Shown here in pieces: positions 17,625-62,524 of a stretch of DNA of 64,000 bases. The translations under genes were made by a program, and so were the position numbers. Every line of letters starts with the position of its first letter. Positions within the stretch are counted from its first letter, which is position 1. The notes under the pieces are model-generated. The model saw only the letters and a list, made by a program, of their open reading frames with translations, did no database searches and was not told the DNA's origin. Source of the stretch: Malacoraja senta (Eukaryota); NCBI GenBank assembly GCA_038087875.1, contig CM075977.1, positions 20,026,001 to 20,090,000 on the forward strand, written 5' to 3'.

Positions 17625-18950
17625 GATAAACAGGGGCTGATTAGGAACAGTCAACATGGATTTGTGCCTGGAAGGTCATGTTTGACTAATCTTCTTGAAT
17701 TTTTTGAAGAGGTTACTCGGGAAATTGATGAGGGTAAAGCCGTGGATGTTGTATATATGGACTTCAGTAAGGCCTTTGACGAGGTTCCTCACGGAAGGTT
17801 GGTTAAGAAGGTTCAATGGTTGGGTATTAATGGTGGAGTAGCAAGATGGATTCAACAGTGGCTGAATGGGAGATGCCAGAGAGTAATGGTGGATGGTTGT
17901 TTGTCAGGTTGGAGGCCAGTGACTAGTGGGGTGCCACAGGGATCTGTGTTGGGTCCACTGTTGTTTGTCATGTACATCAATGATCTGGATGATGGTGTGG
18001 TAAATTGGATTAGTAAGTATGCAGATGATACTAAGATAGGTGGGGCTGTGGATAATGAAGTAGATTTTCAAAGTCTACAGAGAGATTTATGCCGGTTGGA
18101 AGAGTGGGCTGAAAGATGGCAGATGGAGTTTAATGCTGATAAGTGTGAGGTGCTACATCTTGGCAGGACAAATCAAAATAGGACGTACATGGTAAATGGT
18201 AGGGAATTGAAGAATGCAGGTGAACAGAGGGATCTTGGAATAACTGTGCACAGTTCCCTGAAAGTGGAATCTCATGTAGATAGGGTGGTAAAGAAAGCTT
18301 TTGGTGTGCTGGCTTTTATAAATCAGAGCATTGAGTATAGAAGTTGGGATGTAATGTTAAAATTGTACAAGGCATTAGTGAGGCCAATTCTGGAGTATGG
18401 TGTACAATTTTGGTCGCCTAATTATAGGAAGGATGTCAACAAAATAGAGAGAGTACAGAGGAGATTTACTAGAATGCTGCCTGGGTTTCAGCAACTAAGT
18501 TACAGAGAAAGGTTGAACAAGTTAGGGCTTTATTCTTTGGAGCGCAGAAGGTTAAAGGGGGACTTGATAGAGGTCTTTAAAATGATGAGAGGGATAGACA
18601 GAGTTGACGTGGATAAGCTTTTCCCACTGAGAGTAGGGAAGATTCAAACAAGGGGACATGACTTGAGAATTAAGGGACAGAAGTTTAGGGGTAACATGAG
18701 GGGGAACTTCTTTACTCAGAGAGTGGTGGCTGTGTGGAATGAGCTTCCAGTGAAGGTGGTGGAGGCAGCTTCGTTTTTATCATTTAAAAATAAATTGGAT
18801 AGTTATATGGACGGGAAAGGAATGGAGGGTTATGGTCTGAGCGCAGGTATATGGGACTAGGGGAGAATACGTGTTCGGCACGGACTAGAAGGGTCAAGAT
18901 GGCCTGTTTCCGTGCTGTAATTGTTATATGGTTATATGGTTATATGGTTA
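17625..18950 (+). mobile_element. Young CR1 (HER1-like) LINE, 3' part; open RT frame 17664-18860
   Basis: GRSCLTNLLEFF, YMDFSKAFD, GVPQGSVLGP, KYADD; (ATATGGTT)n tail; 5' part runs into a gap. Confidence 0.96.
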
Positions 18951-37924: not shown

Positions 37925-38277
37925 TGTGTCAATATCATCAAAGATCCTCACTGTCTTGGCCATGTTCTCATCTTACTATTCCAGTGTGAAAATGGTACAG
38001 GAGCCTGAACACCGTGACCTCCTCGATCAAAAACAACATTTTCTCGGCAACCATCAGGTCCTTGAATAATGCACAAAACTACCCAGCAACTATGAACGTC
38101 TATAGACTTTGTTTTTCGTTGCACTACAGACTTTGGTTTTGAACTATTATGGTCTGATTAGCTGGTATTACTGTTTATGATTTCACTGTATCATTGATTA
38201 ATGAATATTTCTTTGTGTGTTATTGCTTTAATGGGCTGTTGAGCTGTAGCAAGTAAGGATTTCATTGTTCTATTTCT
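37925..38277 (+). mobile_element. Rex1-type 3' fragment
   Basis: ATCATCAAAGATCCTCAC..GGTACAGGAGCCTGAA..GCAAGTAAGGATTTCATTGTTC. Confidence 0.65.
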
Positions 38278-38356
38278 GGGGGGGGGAGGAGAGGGGGGGA
38301 GAGGGGGGAGAGGGGGGAGAGGGGGGAGAGGGGGGAGAGAAAGAGAGAGAGAGAGA
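38278..38356. repeat. G/A-only repeat, (GAGAGGGGG)n then (GA)n
   Basis: Direct reading. Confidence 0.95.
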
Positions 38357-38360
38357 TATC

Positions 38361-41300
38361 CAAGATGGCGGCGCCCGCGGTGATGCTTGCGTGAGTCCCG
38401 GGGACAAACGCAAGCATCACTGCGAGGCGACATAACAGCCCAGCCAGGGTCGCCACTGCCCCCAGCCCATCATTCCAGCCACAGCCACGGATCACCTCGA
38501 TGGGAGAGATCAGGCAGCTGCTGCACACCCTTTGTTCCCACCTCCTATGGTAACAAAGGATACAAATATATAAACAGTCCCTTCCGAGTGACTGATAAAA
38601 ACAGCATATGATTGCACTGAATTAGTACTGTTGATATTGTTGATATGTTTGCACTGAATTAGTACTGTTGATATTGTTGATATTGCTATTAATACTGTTG
38701 ATATTGCTATTATTAATATAGTTATTATTACTAGGTGGCAGTACGAGTCTGCCTTACCATAGCATACAAAACTTTACCTAACATTCCCCAATTATGGAAA
38801 AAAAAAACTAGTGCTTTCGCACCTGTCCCGCAAAATAGGTTTTATTTAAACTAAAAATGAAAAGAATATAAATAGAAAATAAATGAGTTCATTTCATATA
38901 GGATGTTGGAATATCCAGGGTCTCTACTCTTCAACCTTCGGGATGAAGACTGGGAACCCTGAGTTCCTAAAGTCTATAGAAGACACTGATATAATGATAT
39001 TAACGGAAACATGGTACCGAAAGGATACGTTCATTCACTGCCCCTCAGGGTACCATGAAGTCATGGTGCCCTCAGTAAAAACTACTGATATACGTAAGGG
39101 CAGAACCTCTGGGGGGGTCTTGGTGTGGTACAAAGAAGAACTAGACAGTCACATTACATCAATAAAACAGGGGAAATCACATATATGGTTGAAACTAGAT
39201 AAAACAATTGGAATAACTGGAAAAGATATATATCTATGTGCCGCCTACATACCCCCAATAGAATCGCCATATTTTGAAGAGGATATATTTGAAACTCTCC
39301 ACATGGAAATCAATCATTTCCAGGCCCAGGGAAATGTGCTACTATGTGGAGACCTGAATGCAAGGACCGGATGTGAACCCGATTCCATAGACCCACAGGG
39401 CAACAACCATGTGTTCGGTCAAACCCCCTTGTATGTCACACCAACTATCATTAACCGGAACAACCTGGACTGTGAAATAAATAAAAGTGGTAGAGAGGTA
39501 GTGCATCTCTGCCGAGCCTTGGGCCTGTTCATAGTTAATGGTAGGCTCAGAGGGGACTCGATGGGAAGGTTTACATATTCCTCAGCTCTTGTGTCTAGCG
39601 TGGTAGACTACGCAATTACTGACATAGACCCCTGCACTATCAGTGCATTCACTGTTAGGCAGCAGTCCCCTCTTTCAGACCATAGTCAAATCAATGCGTA
39701 CCTAAAATTTCCTCTTCAAACTAAAGATGTAAAAAAGGAACCAAGTAAGCTGTATGAACTAAATCAGACTTACAGATGGGCTTCAGATAGCGGAGATAAA
39801 TTCATCGTGGCCCTGAATTCACCTGATCTCACAAATAAAATATTGAAATACAAGACTAACCCATATGAGACTACTAGAGATGGTGTAAACATGGCTATAA
39901 AGGACATTAATATGACCTTTCACAAGGCAACTATCAAATCTGACCTTGTGAAACAGAAGAGAAAAATTAACAAAAAAAACAACCATGAAAAATGGTTCGA
40001 CCACGAGTGTAAAAATGTCAGAAAAGATCTGAGGAAAATATCGAACCAAAAACACCGTCAACCAAACAATCCAGACTTACGCATTAGATATAATGAAACT
40101 CTTAAAAGGTATAAACACACGATTAGGAACAAAAGACAAAATCACACTCACAAAAGACTTGAAGAAATTGAAAATTCCATAAATCAAAACCAATTTTGGG
40201 ATATGTGGAATAACCTGAGCACAACAAAACTACAAACATTACCAATTCAAGACGGTGATATCTGGAGAGCACACTTCAAAAATCTATATAAAGATATCCC
40301 AATAAATAAAATAAACTCAAATCATTCTCATATCAAAGAAAAACTCCAAACACTAGAAATAGTAATTAAAGATTATCAAAACCCCCTTGATTTCCCAATT
40401 ACTTTGGAAGAACTGACATTAAAAATAAAATCTCTTCACTTAAAGAAAGCCTGTGGTCCAGATAGCATTAAAAATGAAATGCTCAAGTACAGCACTCCGG
40501 AGATGCAGGACATAGTGCTTAGGCTGTTCAACATCATACTACGTTCAGGTTATTTCCCTGATATTTTGTGCCAAGGGCTTATTTCACCCATTTATAAGAG
40601 TGGAAACAAACTAGACCCAAATAATTATCGCGGCATCTGTGTCAGTAGCTGCCTAGGGAAGTTATTCTGCAGTATCATAAATAACAGAATGCAGGATTTC
40701 CTTAACAAACACAATATTCTCAGTAAAAACCAAATTGGCTTCCTCCCAAAACATCGTACCACTGAGCACATTTACACCCTCCACACTCTCATTGAAAAAC
40801 ATGTACACCAAGCAAAAAATGGAAAAATATTTGCCTGTTTTATTGACTTTGAGAAAGCATTTGACTCTATTTGGCATGAAGGGCTCTATTACAAACTCCT
40901 CTGTTGTGGTATAGGAGGAAAGGTATATGACCTTATCAAATCAATGTATCTGAATAATAAATGCGGTGTTAAAATTGGGGACAAACGCACTGATCTCTTC
41001 ACCCAGAGAAGAGGCGTCCGGCAAGGCTGCAATCTGAGCCCGACACTGTTTAATTTATATATCAACGATTTGGCAATAAAGCTGGACCAGAGCACTGCGC
41101 CGGGCCTCTGTCTTCTGGACGGAGAGGTAAAATCTCTGTTTTATGCGGATGACTTGGTTCTGCTGTCCCCCACAGAACAGGAACTGCAGCAACAGTTGGA
41201 CCTACTTGATGAGTACTGCCAAAATTGGGCCCTGGCAGTAAATCTAAAGAAAACCAACATCATGATTTTTCAGAAAAAACCCAGATGTCAGGAAGATAAA

Positions 41301-42724
41301 TAGAAATTTACTCTCAATGGTATTATTATCGAACACACTATGAGCTATACTTACCTTGGTCTAACTGTTGCAGCATCAGAGAGCTTCAATATGGCAGTGA
41401 ATGCACTAAAAGAGAAAGCTCGAAGAGCTCTCTACGCAATAAAAAGAAGATTCTACAACATCCAAATTCCAATTAAAATCAGGCTTAAAATATTTGACAG
41501 TGTAATCCAGCCTATTGCGCTTTATGGTAGTGAAGTATGGGGGGCCGCTCAGTCACCATAGTTATAGTAAATGGGAAAAACATACAACGGAGGCCCTGCA
41601 TGCGGAATTTTGTCGGAACATCCTCCGCATCCAAAGGNNNNNNNNNNNNNNNNNNNNNNNNNNNNNNNNNNNNNNNNNNNNNNNNNNNNNNNNNNNNNNN
41701 NNNNNNNNNNNNNNNNNNNNNNNNNNNNNNNNNNNNNNNNNNNNNNNNNNNNNNNNNNNNNNNNNNNNNNNNNNNNNNNNNNNNNNNNNNNNNNNNNNNN
41801 NNNNNNNNNNNNNNNNNNNNNNNNNNNNNNNNNNNNNAAGCCCTTAAAACACAAGAGGGGAGCCCAGAAAAGTGTTCCCTGTGTCAGTTGGTACTGAGAC
41901 TAACTACCCCCATTCAGTTAAACCCTATCCAGTTAAATCCTGACCAGTCTCAGATCAATACTGATCCCCAATCACCAGTTAGAGTGAACCAAATTATCAA
42001 ACAATGTAAAGAAACATATTTGGAACATTGGGATAAAGAAACCAAAAGCCAAAGCAGATTAGAATGCTACCGTGCCCTAAAAAGAGATTATAAATTGGCA
42101 GACTATCTCTCAACTGTTAGAGACATGAAACAAAGGCAGACCCTCACCAAATACAGGTTAAGTGACCACTATTTGGCAGTTGAAAAAGGAAGACAGAAGA
42201 GATTCTGGCAACCAAGAGAAAACAGAATATGCGGCCACTGTTTGACAGATGAGGTTGAAACAGAGGTGCACTTTCTCCTAAAATGCAAAAAATTTGACAA
42301 AACAAGGAAAACATACTTTGACAAACTCAGTCAGTCAACCCCTGATTTTAAAGAACTAGATGATACATCAAAACTAAGAATAATCCTTGGTGAAGGAAAT
42401 GCGGCACATCTTGGTGCACAATACGTAACAGCATGCCATAACCTGAGAGACGGTGAATGCCCAATATGCACATATGTACGCACACACTAATTGACATTAA
42501 CTGACACTAAGAAATTAATATTGAATTGCTAAACTTGCTATCCTGTTGTACTGCTTACAGCTGCAAGAACGTGTAGAAATCAATAAAGGGCTATAGGCCT
42601 CTTGCGAGTTTATGTACAGGGACATATCTATCTATGCATTGTATACTTGTATTTATACTTATGCATTTTAAATATGTATGTCATGTTTTATACTTTGGCA
42701 ATATAACAATGTATTTTTTATCAT
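38361..42724 (+). mobile_element. RTEX (RTE-X)-type LINE, ORF1 mostly deleted, ORF2 nearly intact
   Basis: ORF1 C-terminal remnant ending EIRQLLHTLCSHLLW* (38404-38553); ORF2 from 38883; 3' UTR runs into a gap. Confidence 0.8.
38883..42490 (+). pseudogene. RTEX ORF2: APE endonuclease, RT and C-terminal CCHC finger
   Basis: WNIQGL, LTETW, GDLNAR, SDH; NYRGI, QIGF, FIDFEKAFD, GVRQGC, FYADD; RLSDHYLAVEKGR..C..C..E.HFLL.C; premature TAG at 41301 and a frameshift near the G run at ~41540. Confidence 0.92.
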
Positions 42725-52189: not shown

Positions 52190-52625
52190 CCCTCATATCC
52201 CAGTGTGCACATATTTCTCCCATTGTCTCAAACCCCCCCAGCCACCCCAACCCACCCTACTTCTTCCCATCCCCGAGTCACCTGCTTTCCTTCCACCCCT
52301 CTTTCCCCTCTCCCCTGTCTCTTTCCACCTCTTTCTCCCCTTCAGCTTTACATTTCACTCTTCGTCTTCTCTCCTCATCTGACAAAATTTTGTTTCATTT
52401 TCATCTCTTGTCACTTATTCCATCCATCTGCCAATCACCTCTCCCCCCCCCCCTCTTCCATTCACCTATCACTTGGCGGCATTGTTCCATCCCCATCTCT
52501 CTTTTCCAACTTTCTCTCTTATTCCAATCAGTCTGAAGAAGGGTCTCAATTAGAAATGTTGTCTGCTTATTCCCCCCACAGAAGCTGCCTGATGTGCTGA
52601 CTTCCTCTAGCACTTTGTGTTTTTG
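52190..52625 (+). mobile_element. Penelope 3' region and pLTR
   Basis: Pyrimidine-rich UTR then CAGTCTGAAGAAGGGTCTCAATTAGAAATGTT..CTAGCACTTTGTGT. Confidence 0.7.
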
Positions 52626-52815
52626 CTTTGTTGTTGAACATTGGCTTAACCAATGCTCAACAACAAAGCTCATGTTCATGTTTACTCAAACAACTCTGCT
52701 TTCCCATCACCGTATTCTGTGAAACCATGTAAATGGATGACAGACATTCAGACTGCATACCTTGTCCTTACTGATGAATTTGATGACATCAAACATACCT
52801 GTGAAAGTAAATAAG

Positions 52816-55800
52816 ATGGCGGCGGCGCGGGCACATCGCGACGCCCCGTGTCTCCCAAGAACCCGAGAAATTGGAAAAATAGCGACAATTCCCCTACCTG
52901 TCTCAAGGCTGCTCACACGGAGCAGTCTTGCATTCCTTTCGTACAGCCGACAGGAACTTCTGGACTTCGGTTCCTGCGGCTGCAACAACTTTCTGCTCGA
53001 TCTCCGTCTCGCTCCTGAGCTAGTCAGAGCAGTGGAGCAGCGGAGCCGCGGGGCGGTAGAACGGCAGCGAAACCGCGGGGCGGCAGAACGGCAGTGGAGC
53101 CGCGGGGCGGAACAACGGCAGCGGAGCCGCGGGGCGGTAGGCCAGCGGAGCCGCGGGGTGGTAGAACACCAGCGGAGCCGCGGGGGCGCGGGGCGGCAGA
53201 ACACCAGCGGAGCCGCGATGCTGCGGGGCGGCAGAACACCAGCGCGCACCAAGCCAGCTCGGCCGACCGGAAGCACCAACAGACGGCGACGTGAACGAAA
53301 GCACCGCCGGGGACGCAGAGGTGGGTTAAAGGCCAGGTTAGAGCTCGCCCCACACAGGCTAGCGATTCCTAGCCTTTTCCTCGCCAACGTGCGCTCACTG
53401 GTTAACAAAATGGACGAACTCCGGCTAAGGATCACCTCCCACAACTGGATCAAAGACTGCAGCATCTTGATCCTCACTGAAACTTGGCTCAACACCGACG
53501 TTCCTGACAGCGCCATCCAGCTAACGGGGCGGCATTTACTCCGAGTGGACAGGACAATTGACTCCGGTAAGACCAGAGGTGGAGGTCTGTGCATTTATGT
53601 AAACAAAGCATGGTGCACGGAAACCACCATCATCGAGAGTCACTGCTCAGCTAACCTAGAGTTCCTCTTGGTTAGATGCAGACCGTTCTATCTGCCCAGA
53701 GAGTTTACCTCCACTGTTGTGACTGCAGCCTATATTCCTCCTGATGCTAATGCCAAGCTTGCAATGAAAGATCTGCATTCTGCCATTAGCAAACAACAGA
53801 CTCACAACCCCGAGGCAGCCTTCATTGTTGCGGGTGACTTCAATCACTCCAACCTGAAGACTGTACTCCCCAAATTCCACCAACATGTCTCCTTCGCCAC
53901 TAGAGAAGGCAAGACACTGGACAAAGTCTACACCAACATGGCCGAAGCTTACAAAGCCGTCCCCCTCCCCCACCTTGGACAGTCTGATCACCTCTCATTG
54001 TTCCTGCTCCCAAAGTACTCCCCACTCATCAGACGGGTTAAACCCACTGTGAGGACAGTTAAAGTCTGGTCAGAGGATGCGGACTCCACACTTCAGCAGT
54101 GTTTTGGAAACACTGACTGGAAGGCGTTTGCAGCCCAGGCCACCCTTGACTCCCACACGGACATTGACTCCTATACATCATCTGTTCTGGACTTTATAAA
54201 CTCCACCATCAACAGCGTCACCTCCCTCAAACAGGTGACCATATTCCCGAATCAGAAGCCATGGATGAACAGCGAGGTCAGGCTACTGCTGAAAGCACGG
54301 GACACCGCTTTCAGGTCAGGCGATGCCCGAGCCTATAGTTCATCCAGGGCTAACCTGAAGAAGGGCATAAAGAAGGCCAAGCACTGCCATAAACTCAGGA
54401 TTGAGGAGCACTTCAACAACAACTCCGACCCCCGACGCATGTGGCAAGGCATCCAGGCCATCACGGACTTTAGACCCACCAACACCACCCCCACATCCAG
54501 TAACGCCTCCTTCCTTGAGGAGCTCAACCACTTCTATGGCCGTTTCGATAGGGACAATCGGCAGTTGGCCATCAAGGCGGTGCTCCCTGCCGATCACCAG
54601 CCCCTCTCACTCACCCCCTTCGACGTGTACGTGGCACTGAGTAGGACTAATGCACGTAAGGCTGCTGGCCCCGACGGCATCCCCGGGCGCGTCCTCAGGG
54701 CCTGTGCTGCGCAGCTGACAGACGTCTGGACTGACATCTTCAACCTGTCACTTGCCCAAGCAGTTGTGCCCACGTGCCTTAAATCCACCTCCATCGTGCC
54801 GGTGCCAAAACACTCCACTGCGGCAAGCCTCAACGACTTCCGCCCAGTTGCACTTACTCCCATCATCGCCAAGTGCTTCGAGAGGCTGGTCCTGGCACAC
54901 CTCAAAGGCTGCCTACCCCCCACGTTGGATCCCTATCAGTTTGCCTACCGCAAGAACAGGAGTACGGAGGATGCCATCTCAACGGCACTTCACTCCGCCC
55001 TCTCCCACCTCGACAACAGAGACACTTACGTAAGAATGCTGTTCATCGATTACAGCTCAGCATTCAACACCATCATACCCTCTAAACTGATCACCAAACT
55101 CGGTGACCTGGGCATCGACCCCTCCCTCTGCAACTGGATACTGGACTTTCTAACCAACAGACCCCAGTCTGTTAGGTTAGACAAGCACACCTCTTCAACC
55201 CTCACCCTGAACACCGGCGTTCCACAGGGCTGTGTGCTGAGCCCACTCCTCTACTCCCTCTTCACCTACGACTGCACACCTGTACATGGTACTAACACCA
55301 TCATCAAGTATGCAGATGATACAACGGTGATTGGCCTCATCAGCAACAACGATGAGTCGGCCTATAGGGAGGAGGTCCAGCTCCTAGCAGCATGGTGCGC
55401 TGACAACAACCTGGCCCTTAACTCCAAGAAGACCAAGGAGCTCATTGTAGACTTCAGGAAGTCTAGGGGCGGCATGCACACCCCCATCCACATTAACGGG
55501 AGGGAGGTGGAACGTGTTTCCAGCTTCAGGTTCCTGGGGGTCAACATCTCCGATGACCTCTCTTGGACCAACAATACCTCAACTCTGGTCAAGAAGGCTC
55601 ACCAGCGTCTCTTCTTCCTGAGGAGACTAAAGAAGGTCCATCTGTCTCCTCGGATTCTGGTGAACTTCTACCGCTGCACCATCGAGAGCATCCTTACCAA
55701 CTGCATCACAGTATGGTATGGCAACTGCTCTGTCTCCGACCGGAAAGCACTGCAGAGGGTGGTGAAAATTGCCCAACGCATCACCGGTTCCTCACTCCCC

Positions 55801-55998
55801 ACCATTGAGTCTGTCCAAAGCAAGCGTTGTCTGCGAAGGGTGCTCAGCATCGCCAAGGACTGCTCTCACCCCAACCACAGACTGTTTACCCTCCTACCAT
55901 CCGGGAGGCGCTACAGGTCTCTCCGTTGCCGGACCAGCAGGTCCAGGAACAGCTTCTTCCCTGCGGCGGTTACACTACTCAACACTGTACCTCGGTGA
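52816..55998 (+). CDS. Rex1/Babar APE endonuclease-reverse transcriptase polyprotein, 1060 aa from the first ATG inside the element
   Basis: Uninterrupted frame: [28 protein letters not shown]; [41 protein letters not shown]. Confidence 0.93.
53038..53245 (+). repeat. About 7 imperfect 24-35-bp tandem units (27-bp core) inside the ORF
   Basis: CAGCGGAGCCGCGGGGCGGTAGAACGG-type units encoding QRSRGAVER-like repeats. Confidence 0.9.
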
Positions 55999-56181
55999 CT
56001 GCCAATCACACCCCCCCCCCCCCCCCGGACACTCCTCCCACCAGGATTTATTAGATTAGATTTATTTATTTACTGCTCATATTTATGTCGCTCTTCTAGG
56101 GAGATGCTAACTGCATTTCGTTGTCTCTGTACTGTACACTGCACAATGACAATAAAGTTGAATCTGAATCTGAATCTGAAT

Positions 56182-56320
56182 CATAGACATAAAAAGCTGG
56201 AGTAACTCAGCGGGCAGACAGCATCTCTGGAGAAAGGGAATAGGTGACATTTCGGGTCAAAACTGTTCTTCAGACTGAGAGTCAGGGGAAAACAGAACAA
56301 GAGATATAGATGGTGATATA
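56182..56320 (-). mobile_element. Penelope pLTR
   Basis: AGCTGGAGTAACTCAGCGGGCAGACAGCATCTCTGG..TTCTTCAGACTGA. Confidence 0.8.
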
Positions 56321-56402
56321 GAGGGTACCCGGACGTGGCGTCGAAGGACGAGAAGCCGAAGCAAAGAAGTGGAAGCCAAATAACTGAACGGAAGCTAAGC
56401 CG

Positions 56403-56575
56403 AAAAGCCAACTAACCGAAAGGGTGGGACGCGTAAAAGCCAACTCACCGAAAGGGCGGGACACGTAAAAGCCAGCTCACCGAAACGGCGGGACGCGTAA
56501 AAGCCAGCTCACCGAAAGGGCGGGACGCGTAAAAGCCAGCTCACCGAAAGGCCGCTGTGCCAAAAAGCCAAATAA
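56403..56575. repeat. About 5 x 32-bp CpG-rich tandem repeat
   Basis: AAAAGCCA at 56403, 56435, 56467, 56499, 56531 and 56563. Confidence 0.93.
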
Positions 56576-57253
56576 CGGACATGACATTGCCGGGGGGGGT
56601 GGGACTTGTCAGCAATTGGTCCAGAACCCCGTGTCCATCACATCACTGGCCGGGGGAGATGGGAGGTGGGGGTCATTTTCCCACACAAGACCGCACTGGG
56701 CTGGAGGGTGACTGGGCACTCTGAACCCGAGCACCAAGTTGTAAGCGGCCAAAGGAGCGCATCCCTCGCGACAACCCCCACACTCCCATGGCCACGGCCA
56801 TCCTCCACCTCGTCTCCCCCATGCGGCCGCACTGTGACGGGCTGTCAGTCAGTAGCGCACACACACATGGGGCCGGGTGAAGCAGAGTTGGGGACAGTCT
56901 TGTCCCTCCGTCCACCCAGAGTCACTGACCGTGATGCACTGCCACCGGACCCCAACCCCCACACCAGGGTGATTCACCCCCCGACCCCCGGACCCCGACA
57001 CCCACACCAGGTGATTCACCCACCACCCCCCCCTTGCCACGGGGGCAGACGGCTCGGGGCATTGGCAGCCATAGTAAATCGTTTTTAAAACACGGGGGGA
57101 CACACAAAGTCCCTGGCGGGCCGAAAACAAATGTGCATGACAATGAACAATTTTATCTCCTCCCATTCACCCCCCCCCCCCACTTGACAACAAGAAGCAC
57201 ATTTTATTTATTGTTTAAACACAGTAATACTGTCTGGTTTAAACACCTTGCCT

Positions 57254-60200
57254 CAAGATGGCGCTCCTGAGAGGGCGACGTCGCGGAGCTCTCAGAGTCA
57301 ACCTGCTTTTTTGTCTGTCTTTTGTTGTTTTGTGCCATACTACGGTAATATCAGTAGCAATTAGGAACAGTCAACATGGATTTGTGCCTGGAAGGTAATG
57401 TTTGACTAATCTTCTTGAATTTTTTGAAGAGGTTACTCGGGAAATTGATGAGGGTAAAGCCGTGGATGTTTTATATATGGACTTCAGTAAGGCCTTTGAC
57501 AAGGTTCCTCACGGAAGGTTGGTTAAGAAGGTTCAATGGTTGGGTATTAATGGTGGAGTAGCATGATGGATTCAACAGTGGCTGAATGGGAGATGCCAGA
57601 GAGTAATGGTGGATGGTTGTTTGTCAGGTTGGAGGCCAGTGACTAGTGGGGTGCCACAGGGATCTGTGTTGGGTCCACTGTTGTTTGTCATGTACATCAA
57701 TGATCTGGATGATGGTGTGGTTAATTGGATTAGTAAGTATGCAGATGATACTAAGATAGGTGGGGCTGTGGATAATGAAGTAGATTTTCAAAGTCTACAG
57801 AGAGATTTATGCCGGTTGGAAGAGTGGGCTGAAAGATGGCAGATGGAGTTTAATGCTGATAAGTGTGAGGTGCTACATCTTGGCAGGACAAATCAAAATA
57901 GGACGTACATGGTAAATGGTAGGGAATTGAAGAATGCAGGTGAACAGAGGGATCTTGGAATAACTGTGCACAGTTCCCTGAAAGTGGAATCTCATGTAGA
58001 TAGGGTGGTAAAGAAAGCGTTTGGTGTGCTGGCTTTTATAAATCAGAGCATTGAGTATAGAAGTTGGGATGTAATGTTAAAATTGTACAAGGCATTGGTG
58101 AGGCCAATTCTGGAGTATGGTGTACAATTTTGGTCGCCTAATTATAGGAAGGATGTCAACAAAATAGAGAGAGTACAGAGGAGATTTACTAGAATGTTGC
58201 CTGGGTTTCAGCAACTAAGTTACAGAGAATGGTTGAACAAGTTAGGGCTTTATTCTTTGGAGCGCAGAAGGTTAAGGGGGGACTTGATAGAGGTCTTTAA
58301 AATGATGAGAGGGATAGACAGAGTTGACGTGGATAAGCTTTTCCCACTTAGAGTAGGGAAGATTCAAACAAGGTGACATGACTTGAGAATTAAGGGACAG
58401 AAGTTTAGGGGTAACATGAGGGGGAACTTCTTTACTCAGAGAGTGGTGGCTGTGTGGAATCAGCTTCCAGTGAAGGTGGTGGAGGCAGGTTCGTTTTTAT
58501 CATTTAAAAATAAATTGGATAGTTATATGGACGGGAAAGGAATGGAGGGTTATGGTCTGAACGCAGGTATATGGGACTAGGGGAGAATACGTGTTCGGCA
58601 CGGACTAGAAGGGTCGAGATGGCTGTTTCCGTGCTGTAATTGTTATATGGTTATTATATGGTTATATAGCATGGTCAGCCAACGGCGTCTATGACCGGGC
58701 GACCCTACTACGGCTGAGAGAGTGCAGTCCTTTTGGACATTTAGACCCGAGCACGTTTAACCCCTACCCCTACCCTGAGCTAATACGCTACGGCGACTCG
58801 ATGCTAGGCCGACACCCGGACAACGACAGGCCCAGGCGGAGACGCGGCAGATGGGGAGGGGCCAAACGACGACTCCGGCGCTTGGTTAGCAGTGGAAGGT
58901 TAGCCCTCCCGGTCATACTGTTTGCTAACGTCCAGTCTCTGTTAAATAAGATGGATGAGCTCCATGCTCGGATCTCCACGCAGAGGGACTTACAGGACTG
59001 CTCCATGCTGTGCTTCTGTGAAACATGGCTGGGGGAAAGGACACCCGACGAGGCGATAACACCAGACGGCTACACGGCCTTCAGGGAGGACCGGAGCGCA
59101 ACGGACAGCGGCAAGATCCGCGGCGGAGGAACGGCCGTCCTCGTCAAACAAAGTTGGTGTACCGACTGCAAGCTTATATCTAAATCTTGCTCTGAGAATG
59201 TGGAGTATCTAACTGTGAAGCTACGGCCGTTTTATCTACCCAGAGAACTGCAATGTATTATTGTGAGTGTCGTGTATATTCCCCCTTCCGCCAAAGAAGA
59301 GGGTGCACTCAGGGAGCTACACAACATGATCAATGAGCATGAAAACAAATATCCTGATGCTGCTTTTATTATTCTGGGAGACTTTAATCATTGCAACCTC
59401 AAGAAAAACATACCAAAACTGTATCAGTTTGTGACTTTTCCAACTAGAGGAAATAAGATACTGGACCACTGCTACAGTAATATCAGAAATGCTTTTATAG
59501 CTGAACCAACACCCCACTTCGGCAAGTCTGACCACCTGGCAATTCGGCTCAAGCCCACCTACACCAAGAGGCTTAAGGCACAGCCAGTCACAGTCAGAAC
59601 TGTTAACACCTGGACGGACAGTGCACAGGCTAGCCTGCAGGGATGTTTAGAGGCTACAGACTGGAACATCTTTAAGGTGGCCACAGATGACATTCATGAA
59701 TACACAGAGGTGTGAGTGACTACATCAGCTGGTGCACATCTATATGTGCCCCTCCCAGAACTGTGCGTGTGTTTCCAAACCAGAAACCTTGGTTCAATGG
59801 AAAAATAAAACAGAAGATCAGGAAAAGGCAGGAAGCTTTTAAGTCATGAGATCAAGGGGAGTACAAGAAAGCCCGGTTCGAGCTACAGAAGTCCATCAGA
59901 GCTGCAAAGAGGGCATATTCCCCAAAACTTGAAAGCTTTTACCTAATTAACAACACACGCAGTATGTGGCAGGGAATCCAAGCAGTCACAAACTACAAGA
60001 AAACAGTACCAACCACAGACCCCCAGGATGTCACCTTCCCAGACAGCCTTAATACCTTCTATACCAGGTTTGACAGACTGAACACAGACACCCCCTCAAA
60101 AGCCCCCTGCAACCCCACAGACACTGTCTTTCAGGTGACACCCATACAGGTCCTGAAAGCTCTGAGGCTGGTGAACCCCCACAAGGCTGTGGGACCAGAT

Positions 60201-61865
60201 GGCATCCCTCCTAAAGTTCTGAAGGCCTGTGCAGAACAACTCACTGGAGTGTATGTAGACATCTTCAATCTGTCTTTAAACCAAGCAGTGGTCCCCCGTA
60301 TTTTTTTATTTTCCACCATCATTCCAGTTCCAAAAAAAACAAATCCATCCACCCTGAATGACTTCAGGCCAGTGGCACTCACACCAGTTGCCATGGAGTG
60401 TCTAGAAAACTGGTTCTCACACATATCAATCACATGGTCCCGGGCACGATCGACCCCCTCCAGTTCGCCTACCGCCCCAACCGCTCAGTGGACGACGCAG
60501 TGGCCATTGTTCTACACCACATCCTGCAACACCTGGACAGCAGAGGAACATACGTCAGAACGCTGTTCCTGGATTACAGTTCGGCTTTTAATACCATTCG
60601 CCCGGGCAGGCTGACTGAGAAGCTGACAGACCTCGGTGTCCCGACTCCCACCTGCAACTGGATCTTGGATTTCCTGACTGAAAGACCACAGGTGGTGAGG
60701 ATGGGAAGGAGGGTGTCTGCAGAGCTCACTGTCAGCACAGGATCACCACAAGGCTGCTGTCTCAGTCCCAAACTTTTCACCCTGTACACACATGACTGTG
60801 TCTCCACCCAGGAAAATACCATCATTATTAAGTATGCGGATGACACCACCATCCTGGGCCTCATCAAGGGGGGGGGGCGAGTCGGGCTACAGGAATCTGG
60901 TGAACGACATTCTTGCCTATGGTGAGGTGAACGACCTAAGCCTCAACACAGACAAGACAAGAGAAATAATAATGGACTTCAGAAAAATTCCAACCCCCCT
61001 GCAGCCCCTCATCATCAAGTGGACTGTGGTGGAGAGGGCTGACAGTTACAGATACCTGGGATTACAAGTAACATCAGATCTGAACTGGACTTTGAACACT
61101 GCCGCAACAGTGAAAAAATCCCAGCAGAGACTGTACTTCATCAGGCTGCTCAGAAAAGCTGGTCTGCACTGTCGCCCTCTCACCCAGGTCTACAAAGGAC
61201 TGATAGAGAGCATCCTCACCACAGGCATCACGGTGTGGTATGGAAACACCACACAGACAGAGAGGAAGGCTCTGCAAAGAGTCATAAATACTGCAGAGAG
61301 GATTATCAGAACGGAACTTCCCTCCATGGAAACAATCTACACACAGCGCTGTCAAAAAAGAGCAGAGAGAATCATCAGAGACACACTACATCCAGCTCAC
61401 TCCCTGCTCAAACACAAAAACTGCACATACAACCTCAGGCACAGACGAGCGGACAGCATCGCCACAAACAGAACACGCTTTTTCAAGAGCTTCTTCCCTG
61501 CCACAGTGAGACTCTTGGCCAAAACAAAATGAACTGATGTCCTGACCCACCTCATAACATATCATATTATATCATATTATATTGTCTCCTGGGCCTTTGC
61601 AATTTACAATGCAATCGACACTTTTATATAAGGTTTGTGTAATTTACAATGCTCTTCACTTCCCCTTTATATAGGGTTTTAGGCACTTTCTTTCTTTCTT
61701 TCTTCTTTTTTTATTCCTAGAGAAGTATATGTTTTTATAGATTATGTGTCTTTCTGTGTGTCTTTAACTTGACTTGACTTGACTCTCTGAACAACCGCAC
61801 AAGAGTTCCTATGTGTGTAAGCACAAATGGCAAATAAAGTTTTTTGATTTTGATTTGATTTTTGG
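57254..61865 (+). mobile_element. Full-length but disrupted Rex1/Babar LINE of a second family, with a CR1 in its 5' end
   Basis: Starts CAAGATGGCG; APE ([27 protein letters not shown]) and RT (KAVGPDGI, QFAYR, KYADD) in four frame-shifted pieces; (TTTGA)n tail; candidate TSD TTGCCT at 57248-57253 and 61866-61871. Confidence 0.9.
57360..58666 (+). mobile_element. 5'-truncated young CR1
   Basis: Colinear with 17640-18950 (about 17 differences by eye, three creating stops); TAGCA duplicated at 57355-57359 and 58667-58671. Confidence 0.95.
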
Positions 61866-61924
61866 TTGCCTGCGTAATGCACACAACAAGCTCCCACGCA
61901 CAAAACACCAGATAATCTGTAATC

Positions 61925-62140
61925 TGTTTTAACCAAAGATGGACACAAAAGCTGGAGTAACTCAGCGGAACAAGCAGCATCTCTGGAGATAAGGAATGGG
62001 TGACGTTTCGGGTTGAGACCATTCTTCAGACCTGAAGACTGAGTCTGAAGGGCCTCAACCTGAAACGCCACCCATTCCTTCTCTCCAGAGATGCTGCCTG
62101 TCTCACTGAGTCACTCCAGCCTTTTGTGTCTAGCTTTGGT
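61925..62140. mobile_element. Inverted Penelope pLTR pair
   Basis: GACACAAAAGCTGGAGTAACTCAG..GCATCTCTGGAGA / TCTCCAGAGATGC..CTGAGTCACTCCAGCCTTTTGTGTC. Confidence 0.87.
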
Positions 62141-62509: not shown

Positions 62510-62524
62510 GCGCCATCTAGTGTT
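62510..62524 (-). promoter_or_regulatory. Candidate CTCF site
   Basis: Minus strand AACACTAGATGGCGC, close to the CTCF core CCACYAGRKGGCGC, in non-repetitive sequence. Confidence 0.5.

Follow-up and report, generated by a model that had tools for sequence, protein, structure and literature searches.

A YY1/TISU-like block at the extreme 5' end of Rex1 elements contains their apparent start codon

Introduction

Every long interspersed nuclear element (LINE) must carry a promoter inside its own transcript, and the question raised by the locus studied here is how this is achieved when the open reading frame (ORF) begins almost at the first base of the element. The locus lies in a stretch of 64,000 nucleotides of Malacoraja senta (assembly GCA_038087875.1, contig CM075977.1, positions 20,026,001 to 20,090,000 of the forward strand), referred to below as the window, with coordinates counted from its first letter. 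Two Rex1 elements, element 1 (52812-56182) and element 2 (57254-61865), and one RTE-like LINE were recognized in it; the names Rex1 and RTEX, the latter used for the RTE-like LINE in an earlier sequence-only reading, were given without comparison to reference transposable element libraries. That reading had proposed that these LINEs compress promoter and start codon into one 12-bp element and have almost no 5' untranslated region (UTR).

The motif in question resembles TISU, an initiator of translation on short 5' UTRs, with the consensus SAASATGGCGGC (PMC3177215). TISU is found in a single orientation immediately after the transcription start (up to +30), which makes for a very short 5' UTR, and supports cap-dependent initiation without scanning. 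The main protein that binds it is YY1, and its positions 5-12 matter for both transcription and translation; in 64% of TISU genes the ORF begins at the ATG of the motif, the median leader is 12 nt, and at a cap-to-AUG distance of 5 nt efficient and accurate initiation is kept by TISU only (PMC2518114, PMC3177215). Positions +4 to +8 have been tied to ribosome binding on short leaders (PMC3177215). According to the summary of Becker 1993 and Athanikar 2004 in PMC11602158, human L1 has a YY1 site at nt 9-20 of its 5' UTR that governs initiation from the 5' end. A search of the literature for Rex1 or any fish LINE with YY1 or TISU found no link, notes in Repbase and Dfam being outside the search, and the Rex reviews consulted contained nothing on promoter or start codon.

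Results

The block opens Rex1 elements inside and far beyond the window

The YY1/TISU-like block at the Rex1 5' end is real and recurs far beyond the window. Within the window, the exact 9-mer AAGATGGCG occurs three times, at 38362, 52813 and 57255, always on the + strand, compared to a mean of 0.21 in dinucleotide-preserving shuffles, none of 100 of which contained three. All three sites are apparent or inferred LINE 5' ends, and the claim that the motif opens both Rex1 elements and the RTE-like LINE is borne out by these exact matches. Sites with one mismatch are at chance level (10 found, 9.6 expected): those at 18113, 18896 and 57833 were rejected as element starts since they are internal CR1 sequence, and that at 62511 on the - strand was rejected because no element was seen around it. 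No further copies of the three element 5' regions were found inside the window.

A word search with the element 1 ORF listed at least 120 relatives, nearly all of them from teleosts, and the element 1 protein shares 50-83% identity with the teleost proteins among the matches listed. DNA was compared at 13 loci, to which a metagenome scan added one more copy, L016. At 14 Rex1 loci from other assemblies the likeness between copies begins at (C)CAAGATGG, and the DNA upstream is unrelated. Copies of the element 1 subfamily in Tautogolabrus, Merluccius and Triplophysa are similar to element 1 from AAGATGG on and unrelated upstream of it, and three copies of one family in the carp Cirrhinus mrigala share 97-99% identity over the whole stretch between CAAG and the tail, with nothing in common upstream. 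Over 11 loci from at least 7 lineages, mean pairwise identity is 0.26 at -40 to -6, 0.60 at -5 to -1, 0.76 at +1 to +12, and 0.33 at +13 to +40 relative to the ATG.

Target-site duplications set the same boundary, stopping 4-8 nt before the ATG in L003, L008, L009, L010 and element 2. The duplication is GATAT followed by CCAAG in L008, ATTA followed by CAAG in L009, ACAGTATA followed by AAGT in L003, and ACTCTAG followed by four extra bases and then CAAG in L010; GACTTT and CTATT tails are seen in relatives. The extra bases of the Cirrhinus locus L010 (993-1000) read ATGG and repeat part of the motif, and they may represent an addition at the 5' junction or a template slip. Around element 2, the candidate duplication TTGCCT stands at 57248 and, behind a TTTGA-like tail, at 61866, a pairing with a chance of about 1.2% within a 60-nt window, and it places the start of this element 4 nt before its ATG, as the sequence-only reading had stated. 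When copies were aligned in search of any extension well upstream of the motif, none was seen and the flanks were unrelated. As judged from these alignments, full-length Rex1 copies start 4-5 nt before the ATG, without extension upstream of the motif. The block marks full-length copies exactly, which is of practical use in annotation.

The metagenome scan used a leader motif from which AAGATGGC had deliberately been omitted. It produced four matches, three of which were rejected as GC-rich unrelated DNA, whereas the fourth, L016, is a real Rex1 of the L004 family. L004 and L016 are alike only from TGGTGATGG onward, a start that includes a 5-nt leader of another sequence. In both (L004:263-272 and L016:640-650), TGGTG replaces CCAAG before ATGGCGGC; the GCCAT core is kept and the AA is lost, a dinucleotide reported as important for YY1 binding but not for TISU transcription. 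A further locus, L005, was left out of the comparison: it is a complete fish Rex1 ORF identical to P0030 (the same protein as L004) on an unused contig from a human-gut metagenome sample, where it presumably represents dietary fish DNA.

The ATG of the block is the apparent start of the Rex1 ORF

Intact ORFs begin at the motif ATG in element 1 and at six other loci, and the possibility that this ATG is out of frame in relatives was tested on seven intact ORFs of different genomes and not borne out. Thirty-five of the relatives listed for element 1 start with a MAAR-like sequence, and eight more have it a few residues in, in six of the eight after a lysine, the residue that would be expected from an AAG codon ahead of the ATG. 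The MAAR-type start is thus present in 43 of the 77 non-truncated relatives listed, together with a few near-variants, and 43 others are plainly N-truncated gene predictions; many database proteins have a start on one or the other side of the true ATG. When the leader and endonuclease piece of element 2 was searched, MALL, MAPL, MAAR, MAVR and other starts were seen in further lineages, with K-M-A wherever the prediction runs upstream, and the MALL-type N-terminus of element 2 was found again in its relatives.

In the element 1 subfamily, the first methionine is encoded by the sole in-frame ATG before the conserved YxRxxLL motif. Codons 5-60 have a ratio of nonsynonymous to synonymous substitution rates (dN/dS) of 0.30-0.58 between three teleost copies, and the leader is therefore translated in the frame of the motif ATG. 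Taken together, comparison of these coding sequences supports the motif ATG as the real start of the Rex1 ORF. Most Rex1 leaders (52816-52960 and 57258-58720 in the window; proteins P0002-P0239) share a layout of MA.., a hydrophobic stretch, Y-x-R-x-x-L-L, an Arg/Lys-rich stretch and the endonuclease.

The block is conserved as nucleotides

The second codon is GCG at 11 of 11 loci, although GCG accounts for 13.6% of the alanine codons in these ORFs, and third positions at fourfold sites are at or near saturation, with identities of 0.25-0.53 between lineages. On this comparison, the block is conserved as nucleotides, beyond the protein that it encodes. Within it, positions +4 to +8 are the best conserved over the 11 loci. 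The YY1 core ATGGC (GCCAT on the complement) lies in sense orientation at nt 5-9 in all 11 Rex1 loci and in the RTE-like element. Agreement with the TISU consensus is 12/12 in the RTE-like element and in L001, L006, L007 and L008, 11/12 in element 1, 10/12 in element 2, L002, L004, L012 and L013, and 9/12 in L003. The element ends and duplications put the Rex1 ATG at +5/+6, counted as a position in the element.

The two Rex1 elements of the window

The ORF of element 1 runs without interruption from the ATG at 52816, which confirms that this ATG is directly in frame with the endonuclease. The protein contains an Exo_endo_phos domain (residues 191-392), an RVT_1 domain (663-911) and a PF09004 module (917-958), that is, a single ORF with an APE-type endonuclease and reverse transcriptase and without ORF1, and both elements have a 3' UTR that ends in short tandem repeats. 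According to PMC13343379 no Rex1 has an ORF1, and with an ORF that opens 4-5 nt into the element there is no room for one. Architecture, tails and missing ORF1, as read from the DNA, fit the description of Rex1 given in PMC13343379. Among the matches listed, the proteins nearest to element 1 come from teleost elements that share this architecture and carry a generic name or none.

The 5' coding region of element 1 resembles a CpG island, with the ratio of observed to expected CpG falling to 0.16 in the flank and to 0.48-0.58 in the remaining ORF; element 2 has the same trend. The 27- and 35-nt repeats in this region encode repeated QRSRGAVE-like units. The repeats bring to mind the tandem monomers of the mouse L1 promoter, but lie within coding sequence. 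The nearest full-length teleost ORF among the matches listed has 987 aa, 73 residues below element 1 when whole ORFs are compared.

The (GAATCT)n tail of element 1 occupies 56159-56182, and no target-site duplication was found at this locus because a short interspersed nuclear element (SINE) adjoins the tail. A caveat is that the first base of element 1 is T or A (T/AAG) and not C (CAAG). The SINE family, with the core GCTGGAGTAACTCAGCGG, is present at 56183-56290, 61940-62130 and many other places, with at least 11 copies in the window, and has the deepest contig coverage within the stretch examined with sequencing-run contigs. Contigs of 24 sequencing runs climb in depth from 5' to 3' along element 1 and have ends near 52805/52817; these data are assembled contigs, which do not mark transcript starts, and the gradient is typical of 5'-truncated LINE families.

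Element 2 is interrupted by a nested CR1 of 1312 nt. This length is 1 mod 3, so that the ATG at 57258 is in frame with the continuation at 58672, where the frame is open to 59715, and the claim that this ATG joins the endonuclease frame once the CR1 is discounted holds; the match was made by arithmetic and by translating the two pieces by reference, with no joined sequence. The ORF is broken by stops and frame changes beyond 59715. The left edge of the CR1 has independent support, as in three runs many contigs of that repeat family carry different sequence before 57360. Among the relatives of element 2, L012 and L013 carry CCAAGATGGCGCT at the same place with unrelated flanks, and in L011 the first ~8 nt are missing. 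As evidence on the frame, L012, the closest uninterrupted relative, was rejected: the motif is present, but in this decayed copy (231-aa product) its ATG is shifted by one base against the leader frame, and the copy neither supports nor refutes the frame.

The RTE-like element shares the block in another setting

The ATG of the block in the RTE-like element closes after nine codons, as had been noted, and forms only a short upstream ORF (uORF), the main ORF starting at 38883. The leader of this element is consequently about 520 nt long, and the proposal of almost no 5' UTR fails here and holds for Rex1 alone. In this element the 12-mer probably does only the transcription job. One copy, with simple repeats ahead of it, is the basis for the 5' end of the RTE-like element. 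Directly after its block, at 38372-38429, lies a near-perfect long inverted repeat, which forms a hairpin and gave sub-threshold miRNA-like Rfam matches only.

Table 1. Features of the Rex1 and RTE-like elements in the 64,000-nt window
Feature	Position	Strand	Remarks
RTE-like element, 12-mer block CAAGATGGCGGC at apparent 5' end	38361..38372	+	12/12 to TISU; same 12-mer type as in Rex1
RTE-like element, 9-codon uORF from motif ATG	38365..38394	+	
RTE-like element, main endonuclease and reverse transcriptase ORF	38883..41303	+	~520 nt past motif
Element 1, YY1/TISU-like 5'-terminal block TAAGATGGCGGC	52812..52823	+	11/12 to TISU; ATG at 52816
Element 1, CpG-island-like 5' coding region	52812..53330	+	GC 0.66, CpG observed/expected 1.10; candidate internal promoter body
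Element 1, intact single ORF (1060 aa): N-terminal leader, APE-type endonuclease, reverse transcriptase, PF09004-like C-terminal module	52816..55998	+	
Element 1, CpG-rich tandem repeats of 27 and 35 nt within leader coding region	53037..53244	+	
Element 1, 3' UTR ending in (GAATCT)n tail	55999..56182	+	SINE adjoins at 56183; repeat-boundary loose ends 56183/56196
Element 2, left copy of candidate target-site duplication TTGCCT	57248..57253	.	Directly before CAAG
Element 2, YY1/TISU-like 5'-terminal block CAAGATGGCGCT	57254..57265	+	10/12 to TISU; ATG at 57258
Element 2, first 34 ORF codons (MALL... leader with hydrophobic stretch)	57258..57359	+	
Nested 5'-truncated CR1 (1312 nt), duplication TAGCA at 57355-57359 and 58667-58671	57360..58671	+	RVT_1 fragment; loose end 57360
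Element 2, ORF continuation: YDRATLL motif, basic stretch, endonuclease domain	58672..59715	+	Frame-compatible with 57258
Element 2, right copy TTGCCT	61866..61871	.	Directly after short tandem-repeat tail

Discussion

A promoter end and a start codon in one block

The best explanation of these data, which we hold to be probable though well short of assured, is that Rex1 elements are single-ORF LINEs with an RNA leader of about 4-5 nt, and that the block (C)CAAG followed by ATGGCG(GC) holds a YY1 core, a TISU match and the start codon, the roles of YY1 and TISU being assigned by analogy. From what is known of LINE biology, target-primed reverse transcription would copy the RNA to its 5' end, and the sharp common ends of the elements would then mark the RNA's 5' end. 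The block would make up the end portion of an internal Pol II promoter and fix initiation at the first bases, in the manner of the L1 YY1 box, and every full-length Rex1 copy would thereby carry its own promoter. The remainder of this promoter probably lies in the CpG-rich coding region of the leader. In translation, the bases around and just after the AUG would allow cap-dependent, scanning-free initiation on a 5-nt leader, as in host TISU genes, whereas an ordinary AUG context would be skipped at this distance from the cap. The proposal of the sequence-only reading that promoter and start codon are united in one 12-bp element with almost no 5' UTR is supported in Rex1 as to the start codon and the 4-5 nt leader, but the figure of 12 bp is probably an overstatement, since a CpG island covers the first ~520 nt of element 1 and is more likely the body of the internal promoter than is the 12-mer alone. 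Structurally the explanation is well supported, and functionally it is argued by analogy.

Several points weigh against it. The transcript 5' end is deduced from the ends of the elements, and both the YY1 binding and the promoter activity of the block are putative, by analogy with L1 and TISU genes. Predicted proteins were the route to the loci, and this biases the sample toward copies whose first ATG is intact. Some lineages lack the AAG, with TGGTG in L004/L016 and AAGT in L003, and some have another N-terminus (MDI...YDRQ), so that the full motif is widespread and not universal. The geometry also differs from the known cases, as the motif begins at nt 1-2, compared to nt 9-20 in L1 and a median leader of 12 nt in TISU genes.

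Similarity to known start and promoter modules

Host TISU genes are a close parallel for translation: Rex1 agrees with them in the consensus, in the use of the ATG as ORF start and in a leader that is apparently very short. However, TISU is known from cellular, mostly mammalian genes, whereas Rex1 is a mobile element of fishes with a still shorter leader that is likened to TISU on its letters. The parallel for transcription is human L1, in which, according to the summary in PMC11602158, a sense-oriented site of the AAGATGGC type also lies within the first 20 nt and sets initiation at the first base, so that new copies keep their promoter. In the same account the L1 box stands about 8 nt deeper in the element, has a long 5' UTR and ORF1 behind it, and contains a non-initiator ATG, whereas the Rex1 site begins at nt 1-2 and supplies the ATG of the only ORF. 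With its long leader, the RTE-like element resembles L1.

The trypanosome LINE L1Tc likewise has a short module with two functions at its extreme 5' end: its first 77 nt, termed Pr77, act as internal promoter and as a ribozyme like that of hepatitis delta virus (HDV) (PMC3383444, PMC4748587). The second function of Pr77 is RNA self-cleavage and its transcripts are poorly translated, whereas no ribozyme signal was found in an Rfam scan of the elements studied here.

The insect LINEs jockey, I factor and Doc have internal downstream promoters, with an initiator and a downstream element in the first ~30-40 nt. As proposed for Rex1, their promoter information lies downstream of the start site and is copied with the RNA. 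Their promoters use the initiator and the downstream promoter element and not YY1, they have real 5' UTRs and ORF1, and their start codon is outside the promoter element.

Alternative explanations

A first alternative is that the block is a YY1-type transcription element only, so that the ATG that opens the Rex1 ORF is a by-product and translation from the short leader is inefficient or leaky, without a special TISU mechanism. The RTE-like element ends in the identical 12-mer and uses its ATG for a nine-codon uORF only, the L1 YY1 box also carries a non-initiator ATG (PMC11602158), and the two lineages without the upstream AAG still keep ATGGCGGC. However, the leader behind the Rex1 ATG is conserved as protein, with the dN/dS values given above, and the element 1 subfamily has no other in-frame ATG ahead of it, so that efficient use of the cap-proximal AUG is required; moreover, the best conserved positions, +4 to +8, are those linked to the ribosome on short leaders (PMC3177215). 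This alternative is considered unlikely, although it is the strongest of those weighed.

It is less likely still that the conservation reflects only a Met-Ala-Ala-Arg N-terminus and a good AUG context, with transcription by read-through or from a promoter elsewhere. N-termini that begin with MA are indeed widespread, and the Kozak rule, too, is satisfied by A at -3 with G at +4 (PMC2518114). But synonymous positions are fixed in the block, as the invariant GCG illustrates, while synonymous sites elsewhere are at or near saturation; the same 12-mer occurs in a non-coding setting in an unrelated LINE clade; and read-through would not yield sharp common 5' ends.

The sharp ends might alternatively arise by processing of longer co-transcripts, for example by a self-cleaving 5' ribozyme as in R2, some RTE elements and L1Tc. 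HDV-like ribozymes are known from other LINE 5' ends (PMC3383444), and the GC-rich 5' region and the long hairpin after the motif of the RTE-like element could be seen in this light. However, an Rfam scan of 52600-53400 and 38200-39000 at E values up to 10 detected no ribozyme family at either 5' region, only sub-threshold miRNA-like hairpin noise, and the conserved block of 12-15 nt is far below the size of a ribozyme, with identity dropping to 0.33 past +12, all of which makes this origin very improbable. Least probable of all is that the copies are slightly 5'-truncated, or the motif match due to chance, and that true full-length elements reach further upstream: most LINE copies are 5'-truncated, contig depth rises toward the 3' end of element 1 and L011 has lost its first bases, but the comparison of copies did not support this idea, as independent copies in at least 8 assemblies stop at identical bases, have duplications and lie in unrelated flanking DNA, and the motif count in the window is far above chance.

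Implications for Rex1 and other LINEs

The explanation preferred here, a block that joins the end of an internal promoter to the start codon, would make Rex1 apparently the smallest promoter-carrying LINE arrangement so far, with a negligible 5' UTR, no ORF1 and a start codon inside a dual transcription and translation motif. If it is true, the range of TISU, so far mammalian housekeeping genes, would come to include mobile DNA and fishes, the YY1-box strategy would be common to three LINE clades, and Rex1 would offer a clean system for the study of translation on leaders of 4-5 nt.

A broader idea is put forward tentatively, as a possibility that we judge somewhat doubtful: the YY1/TISU 12-mer at the first bases may be a shared start module of the unrelated vertebrate LINE clades Rex1, RTE-like and L1, which in Rex1 has merged with the start codon to give a near-leaderless mRNA with its promoter inside coding sequence. 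Since YY1 and the TISU route of translation are conserved housekeeping machinery across vertebrates, such a module could function in whatever host it enters, and it might aid the horizontal transfer of Rex1. Many transfers of Rex1 between rays and teleosts have been described (PMC13343379). The element 1 protein is 70-83% identical to teleost copies, and its fourfold sites are only 0.39-0.41 identical to those of L002 and L007; any transfer involving L002 or L007 would therefore not be recent. Horizontal transfer has been reported as unusually frequent for Rex1, and the start module, if real, would be a candidate reason for the success of this family in crossing species.

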